24,893 nucleotides of DNA, from the sequence record NC_043427.1. One strand, 5' to 3'. The notes beneath the pieces are model-generated. The model did not search any database and was not told the origin of the DNA. It saw nothing but the letters and a program-made list of their open reading frames with translations. Below are positions 4,606 to 23,034 of this stretch, piece by piece (position 1 is the first letter of the stretch; every line of letters starts with the position of its first letter). A program made the translations under genes and the position numbers.

Positions 4606-5829
4606 TTGAATCATGTCTTTAGTATTAGTGGTGGGGATGTGTTTATAGTTCCATCTAGCTATGAAGTAGCATTTGTAACTCTCAACCCTGAATATACTGT
4701 AGCACTTGCCCTCTACCTCGACGTGAAGGTCGAGGGAACACCATTCCCCGTGAAGATTAGTAATGAGATAGTGCTAGAGCCGGGAGAGGTGGAGGTTAGG
4801 GAGAAGGCTGGGGTAGTAGAGGTTGTAGTAGCAGGAAGGAAGTACAGTGGTGCTCTGGCAAATCCAGAAGAGATACTGATGCCAGCGAAATTTGAAACAG
4901 TAGACATGCTCACAATTAGAGTTGATGTTGATGTGTTGAGGCTCATGAGGGACGTTAATACTGTAGCTTTATCGCTTGATGAGGATGTAGGCCTTGCTGA
5001 AGGAGACAACTGGGCTGTCATCGAGTTTGACAAGGATGGCAAGTTTGAGGCCGAGGCAGTGTTTCACGGTCGCTGGATAAGGCAGGCAGTACCTCCGAGC
5101 GTGTTTAGGGCGAGGAAGGATACAGTAACTATGAGGATTGCAAGGGATAGGCCTGTTATAGTTGAGGGTTATACTAGAGCTGGGCAACGGTTTGTTGCTG
5201 CAATAGGGCAATCTGTCGAGTCCCCAGGAATCCCATCAAGGTTCATATATCTTGAGCCAGAGTACATGAGGCCTAGTGAGCTCCTAGGCGTGCTTGAACT
5301 TGCATTTGATGTGGTGCTAGACTATTATAGCATATATGGAGTATTTACGCATTATGATTTCTTCAGTATAGGGCTCTCTAAAGGGGCTTCAGGAAGGTAC
5401 AGGTTGAGGCATAGCTTGCATGTGCCCAGGCCTATTAAGAGGGCAGTTGATATTGCAGGGGGGCTTCAAGCAGCACCGAGAGACGGTGTTTTAGACGTTA
5501 ATGGAGCCTTGCTAGAAGAGGTTGAGGAGCTACCTCGGGACATAGCAGAGGCAAAGGCTAGAGTAGAGGAGTATCAAATAGTTGAGGTATTCAACGTTAG
5601 AACGAAAGTGGATAGAGCTGAAATCAGGGATGGGGAGTTAATACTGTACAAGGGGAGGAGCGAGGTTCTAAGGATAAGCGTGCCTATATCAGGGGACTTT
5701 AGATTCGATAGCGAGCTGATACGGTACTTCACTCCAGGGGGGATAACGTTGATGGAGAGGGATGGGGAAGTTGCGTTGAGGTTTGAGAAGAGCTATAACA
5801 CATGGCTATTCGTGGAGGGGGTGAGATAA
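4606..5829 (+). CDS. PCNA/sliding-clamp-like protein, apparently two clamp-like units in tandem
   Basis: VAFVTLNPEYTVALALYL, RKYSGALANPEEILMP, LAEGDNWAVIEF and EAVFHGRWIRQAV...DTVTMRIARDRPVIVEG follow the archaeal PCNA motif order; the frame is open from 4561. Confidence 0.6.
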   Translation: MNHVFSISGGDVFIVPSSYEVAFVTLNPEYTVALALYLDVKVEGTPFPVKISNEIVLEPGEVEVREKAGVVEVVVAGRKYSGALANPEEILMPAKFETVDMLTIRVDVDVLRLMRDVNTVALSLDEDVGLAEGDNWAVIEFDKDGKFEAEAVFHGRWIRQAVPPSVFRARKDTVTMRIARDRPVIVEGYTRAGQRFVAAIGQSVESPGIPSRFIYLEPEYMRPSELLGVLELAFDVVLDYYSIYGVFTHYDFFSIGLSKGASGRYRLRHSLHVPRPIKRAVDIAGGLQAAPRDGVLDVNGALLEEVEELPRDIAEAKARVEEYQIVEVFNVRTKVDRAEIRDGELILYKGRSEVLRISVPISGDFRFDSELIRYFTPGGITLMERDGEVALRFEKSYNTWLFVEGVR

Positions 5830-6293
5830 TGAACATAACTATGGAGGACATACAAAGGTTTATGGTTGGCTCGATAGGGATAGCTCTGATAGTTGCTATG
5901 GCAACGTTCATGAGAGAGGCTTTACTAGGTGATGAGCAGCCAAAGAAAACAGTTAGGGTTGTCCCTGGGGATGCTGCTTCTGCAATCCACGAGGTCCTAA
6001 GCACTAATGGCTATGTTTACATTGCAGTTGGGGAGGGGTGCAGCTACTGTCCAATAGCGTATTCAATGGTTGAGCTTGCTGGGATTCCAGTGAGAAAGAT
6101 AGTTGATATAAGGAACCTTAGAGACGAGGATGAAGTATGGAAGTTTGCAAGGACAGTTGGCATATCATCTGCTCCAGCACTTCTTCTTGTCGAGGATGGC
6201 AGGGTTGTAAGGGTTATAGAGTTCTCTGGGGATGTTGAAAAGGATAGGGAGGAGATTAAACGTGAGAAAGCTTATCTTGGGGCTGCATTCTAA
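5829..6293 (+). CDS. Membrane-anchored thioredoxin/glutaredoxin-fold protein
   Basis: N-terminal hydrophobic helix, CSYC(P) CxxC, cis-Pro loop GISSAPALLLVEDG. Confidence 0.85.
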   Translation: MNITMEDIQRFMVGSIGIALIVAMATFMREALLGDEQPKKTVRVVPGDAASAIHEVLSTNGYVYIAVGEGCSYCPIAYSMVELAGIPVRKIVDIRNLRDEDEVWKFARTVGISSAPALLLVEDGRVVRVIEFSGDVEKDREEIKREKAYLGAAF

Positions 6294-7508: not shown

Positions 7509-7764
7509 ACAAATCATAAAGAAATGGTGGAGCTATGTTGGGAGGAATCCCCTGAAGAACTTGAGGAAGAGGCTTATACTGTGGTATGTTACCCTTGTTT
7601 TTTTGATATTAGCCGATGAATACGTTAAGGAGGGCTATATCCTGAGGCCTCGGGACTTCCTTATTCCATTTACGCATGAAAACCTTCTTCTCGTTTTAAC
7701 CCTAGCTTTTATAATTGCTTACTGGAAGCTCCTGGGTGGGAGGGATGATAGGGATAATAGCTGA
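7483..7764 (+). CDS. Two-TM membrane protein; true start uncertain (possibly ATG 7535 via a frameshift, or TTG 7561)
   Basis: Two hydrophobic segments; no good in-frame RBS/start near the 5' end. Confidence 0.6.
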   Translation: MGSSSHFLKQIIKKWWSYVGRNPLKNLRKRLILWYVTLVFLILADEYVKEGYILRPRDFLIPFTHENLLLVLTLAFIIAYWKLLGGRDDRDNS

Positions 7765-8749
7765 TACTTGGGGGATTTCGTTTAGGAGGGTGGCTTTCCT
7801 CACTGAGATGGGTCTTAGAAGGATTGGCTATGTTTCTAGGGTCTATGAGGTTAGGTCTCCAACGATATTATGGGGGTCTTTTGCGAGGATTATAATCGTG
7901 GGGGATACGGCTCTCCTCCTTAAGATGGGTTCACACGAGGTGTGGGCACCTTATTCAGAGCAGAGGGTTTGGTGGGCAGACACCCCCCTTGAGTATGGCT
8001 CGATTGTTACTAGGAGGATGGTTGATTTTCTCAATGCAAATTATAGGGTTGCAGCGGTAAGCGAGTACAACGCTAGGCAGTATAGGGAGCTGGGTGTTAA
8101 GGTTCACGGACTAATACCGAGGCCTGTTGATATCGGGGCAATAGCTAGGGCTGACAGGACCGTTTGGAGGAGGAAGTTTGGAGGAGAGTATATCTTAACG
8201 ATAGGGAGCGATACGATATTGTTAAGAGACAGATATCCAAGGAAGGGGCTTGACATATGCGATGCTGCCATAGGGCTAATTAAGGGAGAGCTTAAGAAGA
8301 GGGGGATAAGGACGGTTGCAGTTACTAACTGGAACATGATGAACTTCGATTACGTGCTACAGGCTGGTAGTCTATCAGATGAGGAGATATACTCCTTAAT
8401 AGTCGGGGCCAAACTGTTTATCTGGTGTAGCAGAAGAGAAGGATTCGGAATGCCACCCCTTGAGGCTATGGCTGCTGGGGTTCCGATTGTCTACTCGGAC
8501 GCTCCAGCACACAACGAGTTCCTTGTTGGCTATAAGGTGCCTCCAAGAGCTGAGCTCGAAGTAACACATAGGGAATCGGGGCTTCCAATGATTGTTTACG
8601 ACTTCTCAGCTAAACACTTCGCTGATACAATCCTTTATGCTCTAGAGGATATTGAGAATGACATGCATCTTGCCTATGTCGAGGAGGGTCTTGAGAGAGC
8701 GAAATACTTTGACGTTAGAAACGTTGCACAAATGTTAATTGAAATATAG
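7745..8749 (+). CDS. GT-B fold glycosyltransferase (GT4-like)
   Basis: RKG motif (YPRKGLD) and REGFGMPPLEAMAAGVPIV signature. Confidence 0.92.
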   Translation: MIGIIADTWGISFRRVAFLTEMGLRRIGYVSRVYEVRSPTILWGSFARIIIVGDTALLLKMGSHEVWAPYSEQRVWWADTPLEYGSIVTRRMVDFLNANYRVAAVSEYNARQYRELGVKVHGLIPRPVDIGAIARADRTVWRRKFGGEYILTIGSDTILLRDRYPRKGLDICDAAIGLIKGELKKRGIRTVAVTNWNMMNFDYVLQAGSLSDEEIYSLIVGAKLFIWCSRREGFGMPPLEAMAAGVPIVYSDAPAHNEFLVGYKVPPRAELEVTHRESGLPMIVYDFSAKHFADTILYALEDIENDMHLAYVEEGLERAKYFDVRNVAQMLIEI

Positions 8750-14125: not shown

Positions 14126-14181
14126 GGTTTTGGCACATACAGACTAAGTAGTAAGGTTTATTACCCCCCGTGCCAAAACTG
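14125..14181. repeat. Inverted repeat flanking the recombinase promoter
   Basis: GTTTTGGCAC 14127-14136 and GTGCCAAAAC 14170-14179 with a 33-nt spacer that contains the TATA-like AAGGTTTATTA. Confidence 0.85.
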
Positions 14182-15413: not shown

Positions 15414-15437
15414 CCTCTTCGTACAGCAAGAAGAGGC

Positions 15438-15452
15438 AAACCCTTTTTATAG
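15438..15452 (+). promoter_or_regulatory. Putative archaeal promoter
   Basis: AAACCCTTTTTATAG, intergenic, about 36 nt upstream of ATG 15488. Confidence 0.6.
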
Positions 15453-15487
15453 TTATGCCCCTTCAAGATTTTTAGTGGTGAGACCAT

Positions 15488-15709
15488 ATGGAGCTTGTTG
15501 ATGAAATCAGATGGTTGAGGGAGGCTTTGCAGGACCTCGAAGACAGGGTTATTAATTGGGTGTCAAGACCCAGGGTTTACACGAGTCTCAGGGAAGCGTT
15601 TGAGCACACTGCAACCGATATTATGCTTGCTAGGACGCTTTTGGATATAGCAGCTTACAGGGAGGAGCTAGCACGGATAGAGAGGGTGGTGAAGGATGCA
15701 TGGGGTTGA
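15488..15709 (+). CDS. Helical/coiled-coil hypothetical protein (73 aa)
   Basis: GGTGAG RBS; heptad pattern. Confidence 0.7.
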   Translation: MELVDEIRWLREALQDLEDRVINWVSRPRVYTSLREAFEHTATDIMLARTLLDIAAYREELARIERVVKDAWG

Positions 15710-16100
15710 TGTTGAGAAGAGGATTTCCGAGCTGCTTGACGAATTTCAGCTATTCACCCCTCCTTTCCAGCAGCATATAATCAGCATCGAGGAGATTCTC
15801 CCTAAAACACCAATCTGTGTGATGCCAGAAGATATGAGAAGGATAGTTGCGAGTGCAAGGCTTGGAGATAGGAACATTGTTCTCTCTACACGGAGAAGGA
15901 TTAAGTTTGACACGACTATAACAGCAAAGGTTGACCCAGCAGCAAAGGCCTTCCTCGATGAAATGATTTCGCTCGGGATATTCGAGAATAAGAGCGAGGC
16001 GATAAGGGTTGCAATTTACCTCCTAAGGGAGGTGTTTGAGAAGGCGATACAGCAGAAGAGGGCTGAGCTAGACAATTTTAATAATGAAGGGAGAATATGA
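15696..16100 (+). CDS. Protein with C-terminal ribbon-helix-helix domain
   Basis: TITAKVDPAAKAFLDEMISLGIFENKSEAIRVAI is a CopG/Arc/MetJ-type pattern. Confidence 0.8.
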   Translation: MHGVDVEKRISELLDEFQLFTPPFQQHIISIEEILPKTPICVMPEDMRRIVASARLGDRNIVLSTRRRIKFDTTITAKVDPAAKAFLDEMISLGIFENKSEAIRVAIYLLREVFEKAIQQKRAELDNFNNEGRI

Positions 16101-16118
16101 GGAATGGTGGTGAGGGTT

Positions 16119-16235
16119 ATGGCTGCTCTCGGAAGCCCAGGACTAGCTGAGACGTTATCTAGCATAATGTATTGGCTCATGATAATAGGAGGGCTACTAG
16201 CTCTAGCGTATCTCCTGATTGAGGTGCTCAGATAA
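16119..16235 (+). CDS. Small single-TM protein (38 aa, MAALGSPGLAETLSSIMYWLMIIGGLLALAYLLIEVLR)
   Basis: GGTGAGG RBS; TAATG overlap with the next gene; not in the ORF track. Confidence 0.65.
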   Translation: MAALGSPGLAETLSSIMYWLMIIGGLLALAYLLIEVLR

Positions 16236-16516
16236 TGAGCATCGAGGAGCTGAGGAGTATTGATGTTGAATGCATATTCAGGCTAATAGAGGAGTATGCA
16301 TCTTACCTCCCAGAGGGAACGAGGAGCGTAATACTTGAGAACTTGAGGAACAAGAGGATAGCGGATGCTAAGGCCTTCGTTGAAGGCATATTGGGGGAGA
16401 AAATAGAACCAGAGAGGCTTGTGAAGGATAACAGTTTAAAACCAGTCTTAGTTTTAGCTTTACATCGGTGCGGGAAGGGTGGGCAGGCTCCTAGTAAGGC
16501 ACTCCAGGGCATTTAG
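16235..16516 (+). CDS. Hypothetical protein (93 aa)
   Basis: Coupled ORF with genome-typical composition. Confidence 0.7.
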   Translation: MSIEELRSIDVECIFRLIEEYASYLPEGTRSVILENLRNKRIADAKAFVEGILGEKIEPERLVKDNSLKPVLVLALHRCGKGGQAPSKALQGI

Positions 16517-17435
16517 CCTGACAAAAAAGGCTAGAGAGATTGCAAGCATACTTGGTGGGATTCTTTTAGGGCCCAATGATAACATTATAGTTGACTATCC
16601 AGCGGTTGCCCTTTATGTGCTTACGGCTAACAATCTAGACCTCGGTTTAGTTGCTTCCACGTATTTTCAGGCTAGAAGGAATATTTTCTATGCTATAGCT
16701 GAGGGAAGACCTAAGCTTCATTGGCTGGCTAGGGAGATGCTCGATAATTCAATTGTTATTGCTCCTTCTGAGTACTCTGCAAGCAAGATTAGCGAAGCGG
16801 GCATACATGTAGAGCGTGTTATCCATTTTGCAGTTACCCCTCCAAAGGTTGACTATGATTACGCTATTAGTCTGAGGCAAAAGTTCCAGGGGAAAAAGCT
16901 GGTCGTATGGGTGGGGGCTAACATGTATCGGAAGGGTGTTGATTTGATTGAGGATGCAGCGGAAACACTCGGTAACGATTATGCGGTTTACGTTGTAACT
17001 GGGCCTGGAGACTATAACATTAACGATATTAAAGCGAAGAACGTTCATGTTGACGACAGAGTGTTTAGGCTCCCCGAGGATAAGCTGGGGGCATTATATT
17101 ATGCAGCGGACGCACTCCTAATGACGACGAGGAACGAGGGGTTTGGGCTACCCTCTATAGAGGCTACACTAATAGGGACACCAGCAGTCATACCTGAACA
17201 CCCGGTGCTTCAAGAGGTCTTGGGAGACTGTGGGTTCTTTTACGAGGTGAGGAGGGTTAGGATTGAGGATTTCTTCGGCTTGATGGATATGGAATATTAC
17301 GAGCCAGATATCTCAACCCTGCCTGAAGCGATGGAGAGGGCTCTTAGGGAGGGGGTTTTAACTAGGTGTATTAGCGTCCTTAGTAAGAGGTTTGGCCCAG
17401 ATAATTACAAGGCGTTTCTTAGGTACTTGATTTAG
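16479..17435 (+). CDS. GT-B fold glycosyltransferase (GT4-like)
   Basis: VWVGANMYRKGVD and RNEGFGLPSIEATLIGTPAV motifs. Confidence 0.92.
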   Translation: MGRLLVRHSRAFSLTKKAREIASILGGILLGPNDNIIVDYPAVALYVLTANNLDLGLVASTYFQARRNIFYAIAEGRPKLHWLAREMLDNSIVIAPSEYSASKISEAGIHVERVIHFAVTPPKVDYDYAISLRQKFQGKKLVVWVGANMYRKGVDLIEDAAETLGNDYAVYVVTGPGDYNINDIKAKNVHVDDRVFRLPEDKLGALYYAADALLMTTRNEGFGLPSIEATLIGTPAVIPEHPVLQEVLGDCGFFYEVRRVRIEDFFGLMDMEYYEPDISTLPEAMERALREGVLTRCISVLSKRFGPDNYKAFLRYLI

Positions 17436-17440
17436 GAGGG

Positions 17441-18613
17441 GTGAGAGGCGTGAGAGTTCTGATAACAGGTGTAACTGGGTTCAAGGGCTCTTATCTTGCG
17501 AAGAGGCTCGTTGAGGAGGGATGGAGGGTTTTCGGGCTGGTCAGGGGGAGAAGCGATAACCACAGATTCGTAAGGCTTAGACTACTGGGGATTCTCGATA
17601 ACGTGGAGCTTGTTGATGGGGACATGACAGACCCTGTGAGCTTGCAGAGAGCGATAGCTAAGACCCAGCCGGACGTGATATTTCACCTTGCGGCTCAATC
17701 TTTCGTTGGAAGGAGTTTCGAGGCTCCGCTGGAAACATTTAACATTAACGCTTACGGGACGGTAGCCCTACTTGAGGCTGCAAGAGCTCATGTACCAGAC
17801 TCTAAGATAATCGTTGCAGGTAGCAGTGAGGAGTATGGTAAACAGTTCATATCGGAGATGCAGTGGGAGAGGAGCGGGAAGCCGGGTCCAGAGCCTAAAA
17901 GGCTCCCCGAGCTCCCGATTCGTGAAGACAACCCGCTTAGACCTGTTAGCCCATATGCTTTGAGTAAGGTTGTTGAGGACTTTGCTTGCCAGGCCTATGC
18001 TAGGATGTATAACATGGATTGTACAGTTCTCAGGGTCTTCAATACTGAGGGCCCTCTCAGGGGAGAGGTCTTCGTTACGGCATCAATAGTGAAGCAGCTT
18101 GTAGCAGTCAAGAACGGCTTGAGAAAATATGTCGAGCTAGGCAACGTTGCAGCTATGAGGGACTGGTCTCATATCGAGGACACCATTGAGGCTTATTATA
18201 ACGCTACAAAGGTGAGAGGAGGCGTTTACAACGTTGGTAGCGGGAGGATTAACAGTGTGCTCTACTTCCTTGTTAGAGCGTTTAACGCTGTGTTTAATGA
18301 TGAGGCAGAACTCGTTAGGATAGAGGATAGGAACGTTATTACACTGTTCCCAGAGGAGGTTGACGAGATGATTTTGAGTTACATGAAGGAAGGTGTTGAA
18401 CCATTCAAGCCAGGCATGAGGATATCTGTGATAGGCAAGAGACATAGTGTTGATGTGGTTCTTAGCAGAGAGAGGTTCAGGCCTGCTGACGTTCCTCTGC
18501 TACAAGCTGACTATTCAAGGTTTGCACAAGCTACTGGATGGAAGCCTATGAGGAGCCTAGACGACATCATAGAGGACCTTGTAAGCTTCTATACTGGAAG
18601 GTGGAAGCCTTGA
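17441..18613 (+). CDS. gmd: GDP-mannose 4,6-dehydratase-like extended SDR
   Basis: TGVTGFKGSYLA Rossmann loop, HLAAQSFV, SSEEYG, YALSK (YxxxK), FNTEGPLRGEVFVT and LGNVAAMRDW; substrate is inferred from motif resemblance. Confidence 0.75.
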   Translation: MRGVRVLITGVTGFKGSYLAKRLVEEGWRVFGLVRGRSDNHRFVRLRLLGILDNVELVDGDMTDPVSLQRAIAKTQPDVIFHLAAQSFVGRSFEAPLETFNINAYGTVALLEAARAHVPDSKIIVAGSSEEYGKQFISEMQWERSGKPGPEPKRLPELPIREDNPLRPVSPYALSKVVEDFACQAYARMYNMDCTVLRVFNTEGPLRGEVFVTASIVKQLVAVKNGLRKYVELGNVAAMRDWSHIEDTIEAYYNATKVRGGVYNVGSGRINSVLYFLVRAFNAVFNDEAELVRIEDRNVITLFPEEVDEMILSYMKEGVEPFKPGMRISVIGKRHSVDVVLSRERFRPADVPLLQADYSRFAQATGWKPMRSLDDIIEDLVSFYTGRWKP

Positions 18614-19269
18614 AGGCCCTCCAACGGATGGAGAAAGTGGTGGAACAGGCCAAGAAATGGGCTAGCAAGGGAGACGGAATCATTAGCGGTAGTGTTGCAG
18701 CATGGCTACAGGGAATTAAATTGCAGCTTCGAGACGCAGACATAATTGTTAAGAAGATGCCTAGCATTAAGGAAGTGGAGATAGTGAAGGCCGAGAGGGT
18801 TGTTTACGGGAGCACTATAAACGACGTTGTTGCATTCATTGATGATGGGGTTGGTGTGGAACTAGTTGCTAATCCAGTTGTGTACAGGTACCTTGCTGAG
18901 AGAGGTGTTGTGGTTGATGGGCTGAAGGTTGTGTCGTTGAGTGAAGTATTTGCAATGAAGCTGGCAAAGCTTGCAATAAGCCTTGGAGCCAGTAAAGCAG
19001 ATATTATCTGGCATCAAGTGCCAAAGACGGTATCAGACTTACTGTTGCTTTACGATGAAGGCGTTGTTGATTTTGCCCGTGTAAGAGATTTCATCGAGAC
19101 GTTTGGGTTCAGGGACGCTATTGCATTGCTAAGATACAGCCATATTGCTCTTGAAGTGCAGATGTCGTTTACTCTAGCATCATACTATCTTGGAATATAC
19201 GATTACGAGGAGGTTATGGAGATTTATCGAAGCATGATGAGGGAGACGTTGGAGGTGCTCGGGGTATGA
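18610..19269 (+). CDS. Pol-beta-superfamily nucleotidyltransferase (AbiEii/MenT-like) paralog 1
   Basis: IISGSVAAWLQG...RDADII, VELV, and KVVSLSEVFAMKL...SDLLLL; start TTG 18610 (TTGA overlap) or ATG 18628. Confidence 0.75.
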   Translation: MKALQRMEKVVEQAKKWASKGDGIISGSVAAWLQGIKLQLRDADIIVKKMPSIKEVEIVKAERVVYGSTINDVVAFIDDGVGVELVANPVVYRYLAERGVVVDGLKVVSLSEVFAMKLAKLAISLGASKADIIWHQVPKTVSDLLLLYDEGVVDFARVRDFIETFGFRDAIALLRYSHIALEVQMSFTLASYYLGIYDYEEVMEIYRSMMRETLEVLGV

Positions 19270-19865
19270 GGTTAAGGGCTTACACGTTAGAAGACCTAGC
19301 TAGAGTCTATAAAAAGGTAGATGCGAAGTTCAAAGTCGTTGTTGGGGATATTGTGGCCTGCATCTATGGATATCCTTGCTTGGCTAAAGACATTGACTTA
19401 GTTATGCCGCTTGAGCTAGCTGGGAGGCTCAAGAACCTGCCAGGCGTGAAACTCGGAGAAGGCAAGGTTGTTGAAACAGAGATTGACGGCATAAACGTTA
19501 GCTTCAACCTTGAGCCCATGTTCAGGCTTAAGCTATTCTACATGCCTTTTATTGAGGTATCAAGGATTAACGGGGTAGAGGTTGCTCATTACTCTCTGGA
19601 AAGGTATGTTGCTGGACGGCTGAAAAGGCTAATAATAATGCTAAGGAACGGGAAGGAGAATATCTATCTCATACCTTATCAGTTGATGGACTTGGTGCCA
19701 ATCCTGTGTGATAAGAGAGAGATACTATTGGGGGCTAGGCGTATTCTTGAGAGGAGGTTTGACATGGATTATAACGAGTTGTTGCGGATGAATAGGGACA
19801 TTATTGATGCTGCAAACAATATGAGTAGAGACATATTCGGAGTTGCTTGCAGATGGTCGTGGTGA
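19266..19865 (+). CDS. Nucleotidyltransferase-fold paralog 2 (degenerate)
   Basis: VVVGDIVACIYGYPCLAKDIDLV and YSLERYVAGRL...MDLVPIL; ATGA overlap. Confidence 0.7.
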   Translation: MRLRAYTLEDLARVYKKVDAKFKVVVGDIVACIYGYPCLAKDIDLVMPLELAGRLKNLPGVKLGEGKVVETEIDGINVSFNLEPMFRLKLFYMPFIEVSRINGVEVAHYSLERYVAGRLKRLIIMLRNGKENIYLIPYQLMDLVPILCDKREILLGARRILERRFDMDYNELLRMNRDIIDAANNMSRDIFGVACRWSW

Positions 19866-19868
19866 ATC

Positions 19869-20537
19869 GTGGTGGTATGGATAAGGGATAGGTGTTGCTT
19901 GAGGGCATTAAGCCTTGCAGAAGCCGTTTTAAAGGAGAGTACAGCGTTCCCTGCTGGGAGCCTTTTGCTCCTCAAGGGTGGTGTTCAGACTTACTTTAGG
20001 GATATTGATATTATGAGTACTGTTGAGGATTACGAGAGGAATGCTGAAGTTTTCAATAGAATCCTGAGTGAATGCACAGTCTTGAAGCATAGATGGCTTG
20101 CTAGGAGCTGTTTTGGTTGCCCTGTCGAGCTTATACCCGTCCCGAGCTTCCTAAAGGAAGAATACGAGAGGAGGGGCCCAGTAGAGTTTTGGCTTGGAAC
20201 TAACATTGCGAAACTTACACGTTGGAAGCACGAGTTCACGGCTGCAAAGTTCCTAGCAAAACTTTTTGTCGTGTTGTCCCAGGTGGATGATATTAGCATT
20301 GAAGATGTTAGGGAGCACTTAGAGGTTCAGAGGAAAGTTGGTTACATGCGGGGTAAGATTCAGATTAAAAAGAGCACGTTTACTCCTGCATATTATCTTT
20401 ACAGATACATCTATATTAGCGATGATACGAGGTTTGTTGAAGCAGCTTATGAGCACGAGTTAGGCGTATTCTCATCAAGGCTTATTGCATTTTTTGAGAG
20501 GCTTCGCTCACACGGAATACCCGTTGAAATCCTTTAG
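19869..20537 (+). CDS. Nucleotidyltransferase-fold paralog 3
   Basis: FPAGSLLLLKGGVQTYFRDIDIM and PVELIP. Confidence 0.65.
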   Translation: MVVWIRDRCCLRALSLAEAVLKESTAFPAGSLLLLKGGVQTYFRDIDIMSTVEDYERNAEVFNRILSECTVLKHRWLARSCFGCPVELIPVPSFLKEEYERRGPVEFWLGTNIAKLTRWKHEFTAAKFLAKLFVVLSQVDDISIEDVREHLEVQRKVGYMRGKIQIKKSTFTPAYYLYRYIYISDDTRFVEAAYEHELGVFSSRLIAFFERLRSHGIPVEIL

Positions 20538-20550
20538 AAACCTTTATTAT
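20537..20550 (+). promoter_or_regulatory. Putative archaeal promoter
   Basis: GAAACCTTTATTAT about 36 nt before ATG 20586. Confidence 0.55.
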
Positions 20551-22120: not shown

Positions 22121-22456
22121 ATGGTTAAGGTCTATGCCATTGACAGGGATGGAACTCTTGAGACTGGAGAGCCTCCAGGTCCTCTCAAGATATGCCAAGT
22201 CCTCAAGCTCCTCAAGCAAGGACACATCCTCTACTCCTATGGAAATTACAAGCTGATTGAGGAGCTGCCCATTCCCTATGCCCCAGGGAGGGACAAATGG
22301 CAGAGGCTCAAGTGGATAATGGAGAGGCATCCTGATGCAGAGGAGTACATCTATATTGATGATGTGGACCAAAAGATGCCTGGATGGAAGTGGCTTAAAC
22401 CCGAGGAGGCAGCAAGGATGATAGGACCGTGCCCCCATGAGGAGAGGGCCCTATGA
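22121..22456 (+). CDS. Minimal capless HAD-superfamily phosphatase
   Basis: Motif I AIDRDGTL, motif II LYSYG, motif III Lys (DKWQRL), motif IV YIDD. Confidence 0.75.
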   Translation: MVKVYAIDRDGTLETGEPPGPLKICQVLKLLKQGHILYSYGNYKLIEELPIPYAPGRDKWQRLKWIMERHPDAEEYIYIDDVDQKMPGWKWLKPEEAARMIGPCPHEERAL

Positions 22457-22690
22457 GGAGCGGGGAGCAATGACTGGGGAGCCCCACCTGAGGGGTGTGT
22501 GCCAAAACCTCTCCTATAATAAAAATCTCTCCTTAGTAGGCTCGGGAAATGAGAAGAATAACCCCCCGGGATTGGGAGGCCCAAAGGAGAAACCATCAAA
22601 GGGGAAATGGCACACAGGACCATAATTCCAACTCTACATAGTCTAGGGAGTATCCTTAACTGAAGGCCTCTTCCTCATTGTTTAGAGGGG

Positions 22691-22718
22691 GTTTTGGCAC
22701 AGACACAAGTGCCAAAAC
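22691..22718. repeat. Perfect 10-bp inverted repeat with 8-nt spacer (recombinase core-site-like)
   Basis: GTTTTGGCAC-AGACACAA-GTGCCAAAAC; the same arm occurs at 14127, 14170 and 22499. Confidence 0.9.
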
Positions 22719-22759
22719 TGTGCCAGCATCATTGTCCATATGAAAAGGTCATCAGATAA

Positions 22760-22839
22760 TGGGGGTCCCAATCCGCTTGCTTATGGTATCCCAGCCATGA
22801 GGCTCATGGTATCCCAACTTCATCAGTCATGGTATCCCA
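22760..22839 (+). repeat. Iteron-like direct repeats with 23-bp period
   Basis: ATGGTATCCCA at 22783, 22806 and 22829; a degenerate copy ending TCCCA at 22770 is in register. Confidence 0.9.
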
Positions 22840-22860
22840 CATTATCATTACTATGTTTCA

Positions 22861-22905
22861 AAGCCCTCTTTCAAACATCATGAATCATTGATGTGAATAG
22901 GGCTT
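22861..22905. repeat. Imperfect hairpin
   Basis: AAGCCCT/AGGGCTT, TTC/GAA and ACATCA/TGATGT stems around an 8-nt loop. Confidence 0.7.
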
Positions 22906-23034
22906 CGGCCTGTGCCAATTTGCAAGTTTTGAGTTAATAGGCATAAGAGTTTAGCTTATAGATGGTACAGAAGAGTTGTGTCTTTAAGCCAATCACCTTA
23001 CCAATTAAGGTATGTTTCCCAGCATACTCTAGCC

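Follow-up and report, generated by a model that had tools for sequence, protein, structure and literature searches.

What do three adjacent genes of an archaeal virus, lying directly behind two sugar-modifying genes, encode, and on what would their products act? This question is raised by positions 16479-20537 of NC_043427.1. The window analysed here, meaning the whole stretch of 24,893 nt, is 100% identical to HE681887.1, the complete circular single-stranded DNA (ssDNA) genome of the Aeropyrum coil-shaped virus (ACV; Alphaspiravirus yamagawaense, Spiraviridae). No other member of the Spiraviridae has been cultivated, and of the 57 genes of ACV the majority are without an assigned function. 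In GenBank, open reading frame (ORF) 38 is annotated as 'putative glycosyltransferase' and ORF39 as 'putative carbohydrate modification (GMD)', while ORF40, ORF41 and ORF42 are each listed as 'hypothetical protein'. We conclude with high confidence that the last three are nucleotidyltransferase (NTase) paralogues of the Pol-beta fold belonging to one family, as the original prediction for this locus had proposed, and we suggest tentatively that they serve in the tailoring of sugars or glycans. Three adjacent ORFans thereby receive a fold and an active site, and a virus-specific family becomes tied to sugar-modifying genes.

Fold and Active Site of the ORF40, ORF41 and ORF42 Proteins

ORF34 to ORF42 and ORF49 of ACV lie on the plus strand. 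ORF40-219 (18610-19269) has a TTG start and is followed by ORF41-199 (19266-19865) and ORF42-221 (19872-20537, or from an alternative GTG start at 19869). In each of the three proteins, an alpha/beta catalytic lobe at the N-terminus is followed by a helical bundle at the C-terminus. The NTase signature comprises hG[GS] at the start of the second helix, [DE]h[DE]h 9-13 residues later on the second core strand and a third carboxylate, in h[DE]h, on the strand next to it, within an alpha-beta-alpha-beta-alpha-beta core (PMC2794190). Both ORF40 (S-G27-S28, D42-A-D44-I, V-E84-L-V) and ORF42 (A-G29-S30, D44-I-D46-I, V-E86-L-I) carry a complete catalytic set, with the third carboxylate where it had been predicted. 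The divergent ORF41 presents the variant V-G27-D28, which is conserved in its orthologues, followed by D42-I-D44-L, with Ser79 at the position of the third carboxylate and a conserved Glu83 four residues on. The spacing between the first two elements is 13 in all three proteins, and in the structure models the DxD motif is carried by a strand (residues 42-47 in ORF40 and 45-50 in ORF42). At the third position, E or D is found in the relatives P0002, P0004 and L004_213 (see below), and serine in the ORF41 orthologue. When 56 ACV proteins were tested with the loose motif G[GSD]x9-15DxDh, exactly ORF40, ORF41 and ORF42 were retrieved, at residues 27, 27 and 29. Shuffled proteomes gave a mean of 0.33 motif-bearing proteins and three or more of them with P = 0.005, adjacency not being counted.

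Comparisons against Pfam, NCBIfam, PHROGs and PADLOC returned nothing for any of the three. With single sequences, phmmer against the PDB gave Thermotoga TM1012 as the best match of ORF40 (E-value = 0.24) and noise only for ORF41 and ORF42. The profile of the eight-member family, however, matched TM1012, a 'putative nucleotidyltransferase', with an E-value of 8.3e-6. The alignment runs from helix 1 over the G-S and the DxD to the V-E strand, all in the N-terminal lobe, and places E84 of ORF40 on a Glu of a TM1012 strand; a second family profile gave an E-value of 1.2e-4, again over the N-terminal lobe only. The TM1012 fragment itself belongs to Pfam PF10706, the ANT(2'') family (E-value = 1.2e-22). 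Among the paralogues, pairwise BLAST aligned ORF40 with ORF41 at 22% over 155 residues (E-value = 0.003) and ORF40 with ORF42 at 24% over 208 residues (E-value = 0.038), with no match between ORF41 and ORF42. Jackhmmer started from ORF40 recruits ORF41, and hhalign joined the ORF41 pair with the ORF40 group over 107 columns (P = 4.5e-5); ORF42 was aligned over a 30-residue motif region only (P = 0.003-0.007).

AlphaFold2 models of ORF40 and ORF42 were both built on the eight-sequence family alignment. The ORF40 model (pLDDT 89.3, pTM 0.89) shows a seven-stranded sheet and then a helical bundle. Foldseek against the PDB matched it to JHP933 (4ok0, E-value = 1.1e-6, TM-score 0.51 over the full length), MenT1 (E-value = 4.6e-4) and TM1012 (E-value = 1.6e-3). 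The ORF42 model (pLDDT 84.4) is partly circular, as the family alignment was its input; locally its topology differs, with a helix at residues 51-64 against a hairpin in ORF40. Its best match was MenT1 (8an4/8an5, E-value = 6.5e-4, TM-score 0.47-0.57), followed by CCA-adding enzymes, terminal uridylyltransferases (TUTases), TM1012 and ANT(2'')-Ia. All significant matches of the two models are NTases. When the ORF40 model was compared with the third-party viral models of BFVD, ORF41 (J7QC75) ranked second (E-value = 5.6e-6, TM-score 0.48/0.53) and ORF42 (J7Q212) eighth (E-value = 1e-3, TM-score 0.53), and the UniProt entry of ORF40 (J7Q329) carries the automatic name 'Nucleotidyltransferase'. 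That ORF40 has the Pol-beta NTase fold is in our view practically certain; for ORF41 we hold it to be very likely and for the most divergent paralogue, ORF42, still highly probable. The three genes are very old duplicates of one gene. The paralogy of ORF40 and ORF41 appears well supported by sequence comparison, while that of ORF42 is suggested by its motif and by the structure models.

The changes in ORF41 had previously been taken as a possible sign of a pseudo-enzyme. The G-D in place of G-S and the Ser79 in place of the carboxylate were verified, yet the label seems premature, since the altered residues are conserved across orthologues. The ORF41 orthologue of the metagenomic sequence L004 (6842-7510, 222 aa, 39% identity) keeps the G-D, the DxD and the entire NVSFNLEP block. 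This indicates an active site that is altered yet conserved rather than one in decay, and a function that was probably changed rather than lost. We also considered the G-D as a mimic of the inhibitory phosphorylation of MenT toxins and rejected it, as T39, the phospho-acceptor of MenT1, lies two residues before the catalytic Asp and not in the hG[GS].

As modelled, the fold fixes the chemistry to a metal-dependent nucleotidyl or phospho-linked transfer to a hydroxyl, and it does not set the acceptor. Synthesis of GDP-mannose by ORF40, ORF41 or ORF42 was ruled out on fold: sugar-1-phosphate nucleotidyltransferases have a fold that differs from that of the Pol-beta NTases. A role of the C-terminal lobe as a HEPN RNase was likewise discarded, no Rx4-6H being conserved in it.

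Gene Organization and the Sugar Genes

Upon recomputation, the five ORFs from ORF38 to ORF42 proved to have the coordinates, overlaps, gaps and motifs that had been reported. From ORF38 to ORF42 they are joined, in this order, by a gap of 5 nt, a TTGA and an ATGA overlap, and a gap of 3 or 6 nt, depending on which GTG, that at 19869 or the next one, starts ORF42. By its sequence pattern, a TATA-like box, TTTATTAT, at 20543-20550, inside the 48-nt gap 3' of ORF42, accords with a promoter at the end of this tight string. The start of the string had been placed at ORF38; we place it at ORF34, since ORF37 overlaps the start of ORF38 by 38 nt and the packing from ORF34 to ORF37 is as tight as that from ORF38 to ORF42. 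The box core AAACCCTTTTTAT at 15438-15450, upstream of ORF34, matches the box after ORF42. The whole first promoter-like box, AAACCCTTTTTATAGT (15438-15453), combines a purine-rich element with a TATA and lies about 40-45 nt upstream of the ORF34 start, and the second, AAACCTTTATTAT (20538-20550), precedes ORF43 and marks the end of the unit. Both share the form AAACC-TTT-TAT. The pattern AAACCYTTTWTWW, with at most one mismatch, has only two matches in the genome, at 15438 and 20538, both intergenic and about 45 nt before a start codon. Because these sole two matches precede ORF34 and ORF43, the transcription unit is likely to comprise the nine genes from ORF34 to ORF42, and the three NTase genes appear to be co-transcribed with the two sugar genes. 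Between the stop codon of the recombinase gene, which it directly follows, and the first box stands the inverted repeat CTCTTCGTACAGCAAGAAGAG (15415-15436), a candidate terminator or binding site.

The first four genes of the unit are small. ORF34-73 (15488-15709) opens it and encodes a small acidic protein with a weak homologue, in the same order, in a 40-kb relative of ACV described below. ORF35-134 (15696-16100) is annotated as a ribbon-helix-helix (RHH) DNA-binding protein; its C-terminus resembles ParD-type RHH proteins (TIGR02606, E-value = 2.5e-5, under the cut-off) and its homologue is syntenic in L004. ORF36-43 (16104-16235) encodes a short peptide of hydrophobic sequence, and ORF37-93 (16235-16516) has a weak homologue directly upstream of the glycosyltransferase (GT) gene in L004.

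ORF38-318 (16479-17435) encodes a GT-B glycosyltransferase of family 4 (GT4). It scored above threshold with PF00534 Glycos_transf_1 (44.3 bits against 26.4) and PF13692 Glyco_trans_1_4 (41.9 bits against 27), matched the PHROG 2170 glycosyltransferase (E-value = 1.8e-53) and contains an E-x7-E-like stretch, EGFGLPSIE. It also passes the cut-off of PF20706, 'GT4 in conflict systems' (28.5 bits against 26), in a match that spans 61 residues. ORF39-390 (17441-18613) encodes a short-chain dehydrogenase/reductase resembling GDP-mannose 4,6-dehydratase (GMD). It matched PF16363 GDP_Man_Dehyd with 257.5 bits and, in the PDB, the Aquifex GMD 2z1m (E-value = 2.6e-50), with which its S-x-E and YxxxK positions are in register, apart from two insertions. 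The GT4 of the original prediction is upheld, and its GMD-like enzyme at the level of the family. The GDP-4-keto-6-deoxymannose reductase (RMD) 2pk3 is nearly as good a match as GMD (E-value = 1e-43) and the score with TIGR01472 (176.6) is below the equivalog cut-off of 415; for these reasons ORF39 is assigned only at the level of the GMD/RMD family. In a tblastn search of phage records with the GMD, cyanophage GMDs showed ~32% identity, and none of the best 25 records listed came from another archaeal virus. ACV has a second GT4-like glycosyltransferase, ORF19-334 (7745-8749), homologues of which are present in the longer spiravirus-like contigs covering the region (E-value about 1e-82 in three); unlike ORF38, it belongs to the core gene set.

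Relatives in Metagenomic Contigs

An exhaustive search of 1.84 billion representative proteins with ORF40 gave only two credible homologues, P0002 (~56% identity) and P0004 (28%). Two long proteins from the same search (1,414 and 1,540 aa) matched over short stretches only and were taken as spurious. A word-indexed search found one relative for ORF40 and no homologue of ORF42, for which none was found anywhere; with the family profile it added no new member, and scans of IMG/VR with ORF40 and ORF41 alignments retrieved ACV itself only. The extra members came from the contigs carrying ORF40 relatives, namely the ORF41 orthologue, a 213-aa ORF40-like protein (L004_213) and a degenerate copy. The last one forms the N-terminal 230 residues of a 332-aa protein of L004 and has G-E in the first motif, E-R-I-E in place of DxD and Ser at the third carboxylate. 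Judged from these searches, the family seems so far known only from spiravirus-like viruses.

The C-terminal 105 residues of the same 332-aa fusion protein (L004 12588-13586) are 47% identical to ACV ORF49-111 (22121-22456), a small protein lying outside the nine-gene unit, and phmmer linked ORF49 to L004 12558-13583 with an E-value of 3e-33. ORF49 bears a DRDGT...GN...K...DD pattern, of which DRDGT...GN...K...D is conserved in the two-sequence alignment with the L004 homologue. By this motif only, ORF49 may be a phosphatase of the haloacid dehalogenase (HAD) type; it matched nothing in Pfam, NCBIfam or the PDB, HAD profiles and structures included.

The link between NTases and sugar genes, which had been put forward for ACV, recurs in two related viral contigs. 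In the 1.6-kb ENA contig L002, the order GMD, ORF40 homologue, ORF41 homologue is retained; the GMD homologue (2-746) is split there into two overlapping frames (2-613 and 594-746), either by an assembly frameshift or as a pseudogene. The sequences L025, L004 and L023 turned out to be one ENA contig (ERZ23491094, JOHN19-1 scaffold_704) of 39,965 bp, colinear with the whole ACV genome. In the 37,833 bp examined, an ORF19 homologue stands at the start and an ORF17 homologue at the end, and since no internal repeat is present the contig is not a concatemer. The 2012 genome paper of ACV reportedly calls it, in its title, the largest ssDNA genome; if the 40-kb contig is an ssDNA spiravirus, its genome would be far larger than that of ACV. 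In the stretch equivalent to ACV ORF33-56 the gene order is heavily shuffled. Even so, the ORF38-type GT is directly followed by the ORF41 orthologue and the GMD directly by the fusion protein and the 213-aa fourth member, and two small ORFs separate the GMD from the ORF40-like gene upstream of it. The chance that at least two of the four members would fall into the four slots beside GT and GMD is about 0.01, a figure inflated by shared ancestry.

Scanning with the ACV recombinase revealed 15 spiravirus-like contigs in JGI hydrothermal metagenomes (the L008-L022, L026 set: Ga0136651, Ga0190363, Ga0180301, Ga0190338, Ga0209834, Ga0180298; Guaymas contig QMWT01000106.1), with a recombinase identity of 60-68%. 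The scan of genome contigs gave one viral contig only, binned into the Guaymas metagenome-assembled genome and the same as one of the JGI contigs. Most of these contigs also have ORF29 and ORF27 homologues, the longer ones ORF19, 21-23 and 25 as well, and their recombinase gene is inverted relative to its neighbours, which is not so in ACV. Viruses resembling the Spiraviridae thus seem to be widespread in hydrothermal samples, compared with the single species in the ICTV profile, and these relatives, including the ~40-kb contig, can be used for comparison. Both the GMD and the NTase family are missing from these other spiravirus-like contigs, including two that span the equivalent region. Because of this absence we regard the cassette as accessory, and as far as three genomes show, the NTase family appears to co-vary with GMD. 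In contig L011, an ORF38-like GT is present and GMD and NTases are both missing. The same contig encodes a lectin-like protein (5461-5970, minus strand; Pfam Agglutinin_C, E-value = 8.5e-6, just under threshold) ~500 bp from the GT, with one small ORF between them. Three tandem ORFs of 158 aa at the equivalent place in L016 were considered as minimal NTases and rejected, having neither the motif nor any HMM match.

Proposed Function

We slightly favour the tailoring of sugars or glycans by the unit over the MenT-like modification of RNA 3' ends, and hold this preference tentatively. The unit would be an accessory glycan-tailoring module, in which ORF39 would convert GDP-mannose to a GDP-4-keto-6-deoxyhexose, or carry it on to a 6-deoxyhexose, and ORF38 would place a sugar on a surface protein of the virus or of the host. 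Hydroxyls of sugars in that glycan, or in its nucleotide-sugar precursor, could then receive a nucleotidyl or phospho-linked group from the NTase paralogues, a chemistry like that of ANT(2'')/lincosamide NTases and LicD. They might act as a hetero-oligomer, with ORF41 as a specialised or regulatory subunit, and the HAD-like ORF49 may remove phosphate in the same pathway. The tailoring of sugars is favoured because the GT/GMD neighbourhood survives rearrangement, because the NTase family is missing where GMD is missing, and because TM1012, the sole relative detectable by sequence, belongs to a family that modifies sugar hydroxyls. Characterised members of the ANT(2'')-Ia family nucleotidylylate sugar hydroxyls by AMP transfer. 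TM1012 was also the closest template for the NTase domains of fukutin and FKRP in an earlier study (PMC2794190). The proteins of the ORF40 clade are acidic to neutral (pI 5.4-6.6), unlike MenT1, which has an electropositive cavity for RNA/tRNA (PMC10435456). Moreover, the infection by ACV is chronic and non-lytic (PMC7416610) and therefore a poor fit with three translation poisons, and three to four conserved, differentiated paralogues would suit a pathway with several acceptor positions.

Several points weigh against an action on sugars. The best full-length structural matches are of the AbiEii/MenT type (JHP933, MenT1), and these act on tRNA. No Pfam match to LicD was obtained, and FKRP, fukutin and LicD are not named in either Foldseek top 50. 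Gene adjacency says little in a virus that is 93% coding (93.5% over the whole ACV genome, where dense packing is typical), and in three related genomes it may have been inherited rather than selected. GMD and GT4 form a self-sufficient pair that needs no NTase, and no glycan on ACV virions is described in the literature examined. Finally, the HAD assignment of ORF49 stays at motif level, and an NTase-phosphatase fusion would fit RNA 3'-end repair equally well. The most elaborate form of the proposal, a heteromer of the complete ORF40 and ORF42 with the altered ORF41 that works with the dehydratase, the GT4 and a HAD-like phosphatase to attach nucleotide- or sugar-phosphate groups to glycans, is in our judgment rather unlikely.

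Next to the tailoring of sugars, the reading that survives best, possible although somewhat doubtful, is that the paralogues are MenT/AbiEii-like NTases of RNA 3' ends, which would add nucleotides to the acceptor of host tRNA or to other RNA 3' ends. They could thereby modulate host translation, serve as an addiction module for the chronic carrier state, or repair tRNA 3' ends together with the HAD-like phosphatase after the action of host defences, and the co-transcription with sugar genes would be a matter of operon packing only. This accords with the Foldseek results, in which ORF40 is closest to JHP933 and MenT1, and ORF42 to MenT1, then to CCA-adding enzymes and TUTases, and with the seven-stranded sheet and helical bundle of the ORF40 model, as described for MenT1. 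A phosphatase is at hand as a plausible partner, and its fusion to an NTase-like domain also has precedent; bacterial CCA-adding enzymes carry an HD phosphatase domain. ORF35, ORF43 and an RHH gene behind L004_213 are small genes of RHH or winged helix-turn-helix (wHTH) type in or beside the unit; no AbiEi or MenA partner was recognised.

The motifs of AbiEii proteins allow a closer comparison. They are hG[GS]x15DhD with an internal Arg, a Lys in motif III and +DxxD in motif IV (PMC3985639). Where the helical lobe of the viral proteins begins, Lys117 is conserved in a manner similar to motif III; K117-L118 is invariant in the ORF40 clade, and Arg replaces the Lys in the ORF41 clade. P0002 gives a weak match to AbiEii PF08843 (E-value = 0.098) at the start of the same lobe, but no member reaches the Pfam threshold. 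The spacing of motifs I and II is x13 instead of x15, with Arg/Lys at -1 of the first Asp and not at -4, and the next helix conserves P-[KY]-x-h-x-D with no +DxxD pentad. The acidity of the ORF40 clade also speaks against an RNA substrate, three or four toxins would be awkward for a non-lytic chronic virus, and this reading does not account for members of the family lying beside GT and GMD again after rearrangement. The comparison with AbiEii/MenT made in the original prediction is supported as regards JHP933 and MenT1, the closest full-length structures, and nothing ties the family to LicD/fukutin, which it had also named.

Clearly less probable is that the proteins nucleotidylylate other proteins, like the MNT antitoxins that AMPylate HEPN toxins, or like GlnE. 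As an anti-defence cassette they would be directed against host HEPN-type RNases, whether of toxin-antitoxin or of CRISPR type III accessory systems. Hyperthermophilic archaea are rich in HEPN-MNT pairs, the Pol-beta fold and the intact catalytic set of ORF40 and ORF42 would allow the reaction, and rapidly diverging paralogues together with the ORFan ORF42 are typical of arms-race genes. The passing of the 'GT4 in conflict systems' threshold by ORF38 could be added (PMC8195603), but as its 61 residues cover the generic GT4 core only, we rejected it as evidence of anti-defence. No match to an MNT-family Pfam entry and none of note in PADLOC was obtained, minimal NTases are half the size of the viral proteins, and no Rx4-6H is conserved in the C-terminal lobe of the latter.

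Even less probable is a direct role for the viral genome or the virion, in which the proteins would serve the 24.9-kb ssDNA genome by terminal transfer or priming, or would be the 23-kDa major virion protein. ACV has no identifiable replication protein (Rep or polymerase), and its 23- and 18.5-kDa major virion proteins have been described only by mass in the profile examined (PMC7416610). The calculated mass of ORF41 is 23.1 kDa, and the 3' ends of nucleic acids can be extended by enzymes of the Pol-beta fold. One would, however, expect a replication or capsid protein to be universal, and most spiravirus-like contigs with the core ORF3, 19, 21-23, 25, 27, 29 and 33 lack the family, among them contigs that span the equivalent region, so that a major capsid protein or replication factor was rejected. 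Decoration of the viral DNA, another earlier idea, finds no supporting gene in the ACV genome, and DNA hypermodification was dismissed, as the annotation includes no base-modifying enzyme. Lastly, that the motifs match by chance and that ORF41 and ORF42 are unrelated proteins of unknown fold, as the weak pairwise BLAST results and the partly circular ORF42 model might suggest, is hardly credible given the motif statistics (P = 0.005 even before adjacency and the same N-terminal position are counted), the hhalign support for ORF41, the agreement of the third-party BFVD models with the ORF40 model, and an ORF42 model that matches NTases despite a topology unlike that of ORF40.

Other Features of the Genome

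Within the largest non-coding gap of ACV (22626-22961), GGTTTTGGCACAGACACAAGTGCCAAAAC forms a hairpin at about 22690-22718, and ATGGTATCCCA stands in three direct copies at about 22783-22840. The stretch 22708-22845 shares 73.6% identity with L004 19513-19650, a higher conservation than that of the coding DNA. From its sequence, this gap is a candidate replication origin or recombination site. The motif GGTTTTGGCACAKAC occurs in three copies (0.04 expected), one of them just upstream of the recombinase gene; its sites include 14126-14140 and 22495-22509.

Comparison with Known Systems

The Pol-beta fold is known, as are enzymes of the GT4 and GMD-like kinds, and the GenBank annotation of ORF38 and ORF39 and the automatic NTase name of ORF40 already existed. 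What we consider new is the membership of ORF41 and ORF42 in the family of ORF40, the restriction of this family to spiravirus-like viruses, the presence of catalytically complete and altered members, the travelling of the family with GMD and GT, and the fusion of one member to an ORF49-type domain. A full-text literature search retrieved no paper that ties ACV to nucleotidyltransferases.

Among glycan-modifying NTases, LicD, fukutin and FKRP (PF04991, PF06828) resemble the viral proteins in the NTase fold and in their link to glycosylation pathways, where they use NDP-activated donors, but none of the eight viral members matches these Pfam families at E <= 1 and they are found in neither Foldseek top 50. 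TM1012/ANT(2'')-Ia (PF10706) is the only relative detectable by sequence and a structural match of both models. It aligns, however, with the N-terminal lobe alone, hmmscan with the Pfam model detects no family member, and the viral proteins are 40-60 residues longer with an unlike helical lobe. The sugar genes in turn recall the GMD and GT4 pairs that make 6-deoxyhexose glycans, in that ORF39 matches GMD and RMD structures and adjoins a GT4 and, like the GMDs of cyanophages and chloroviruses, is virus-encoded. Examples are the D-rhamnan pathway of Pseudomonas and the GMD of chlorovirus PBCV-1. The ACV pair differs in that no 4-reductase or epimerase gene accompanies it, and in the insertions of ORF39 and its score below the equivalog cut-off.

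The closest likeness in overall architecture is to the AbiEii/MenT proteins (DUF1814, PF08843, including JHP933 of H. pylori), which share a length of ~190-230 residues, the NTase sheet with a helical bundle, the best full-length structural match, a Lys conserved where the helical lobe starts and, as in M. tuberculosis, several divergent paralogues per genome. The differences are that no member matches PF08843 significantly (P0002 does best, with 13 bits against a cut-off of 22.5), that the viral proteins have x13 instead of x15 spacing, no clear +DxxD and no cognate antitoxin gene, and that they are encoded by a virus and not within a defence or toxin-antitoxin locus of a cell, are linked to sugar genes and, in the ORF40 clade, are acidic. 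To our knowledge, no described GMD/GT4 cluster includes Pol-beta NTases and no virus-encoded MenT-like trio has been described. If the acceptor is a glycan, its decoration would be a chemistry new to viruses, by which viral glycobiology would gain a further type of reaction and the MenT/ANT(2'')-like NTases a new functional branch; if it is tRNA, these proteins would be the first MenT-like effectors known to us that are deployed by a virus and not by cellular defence.

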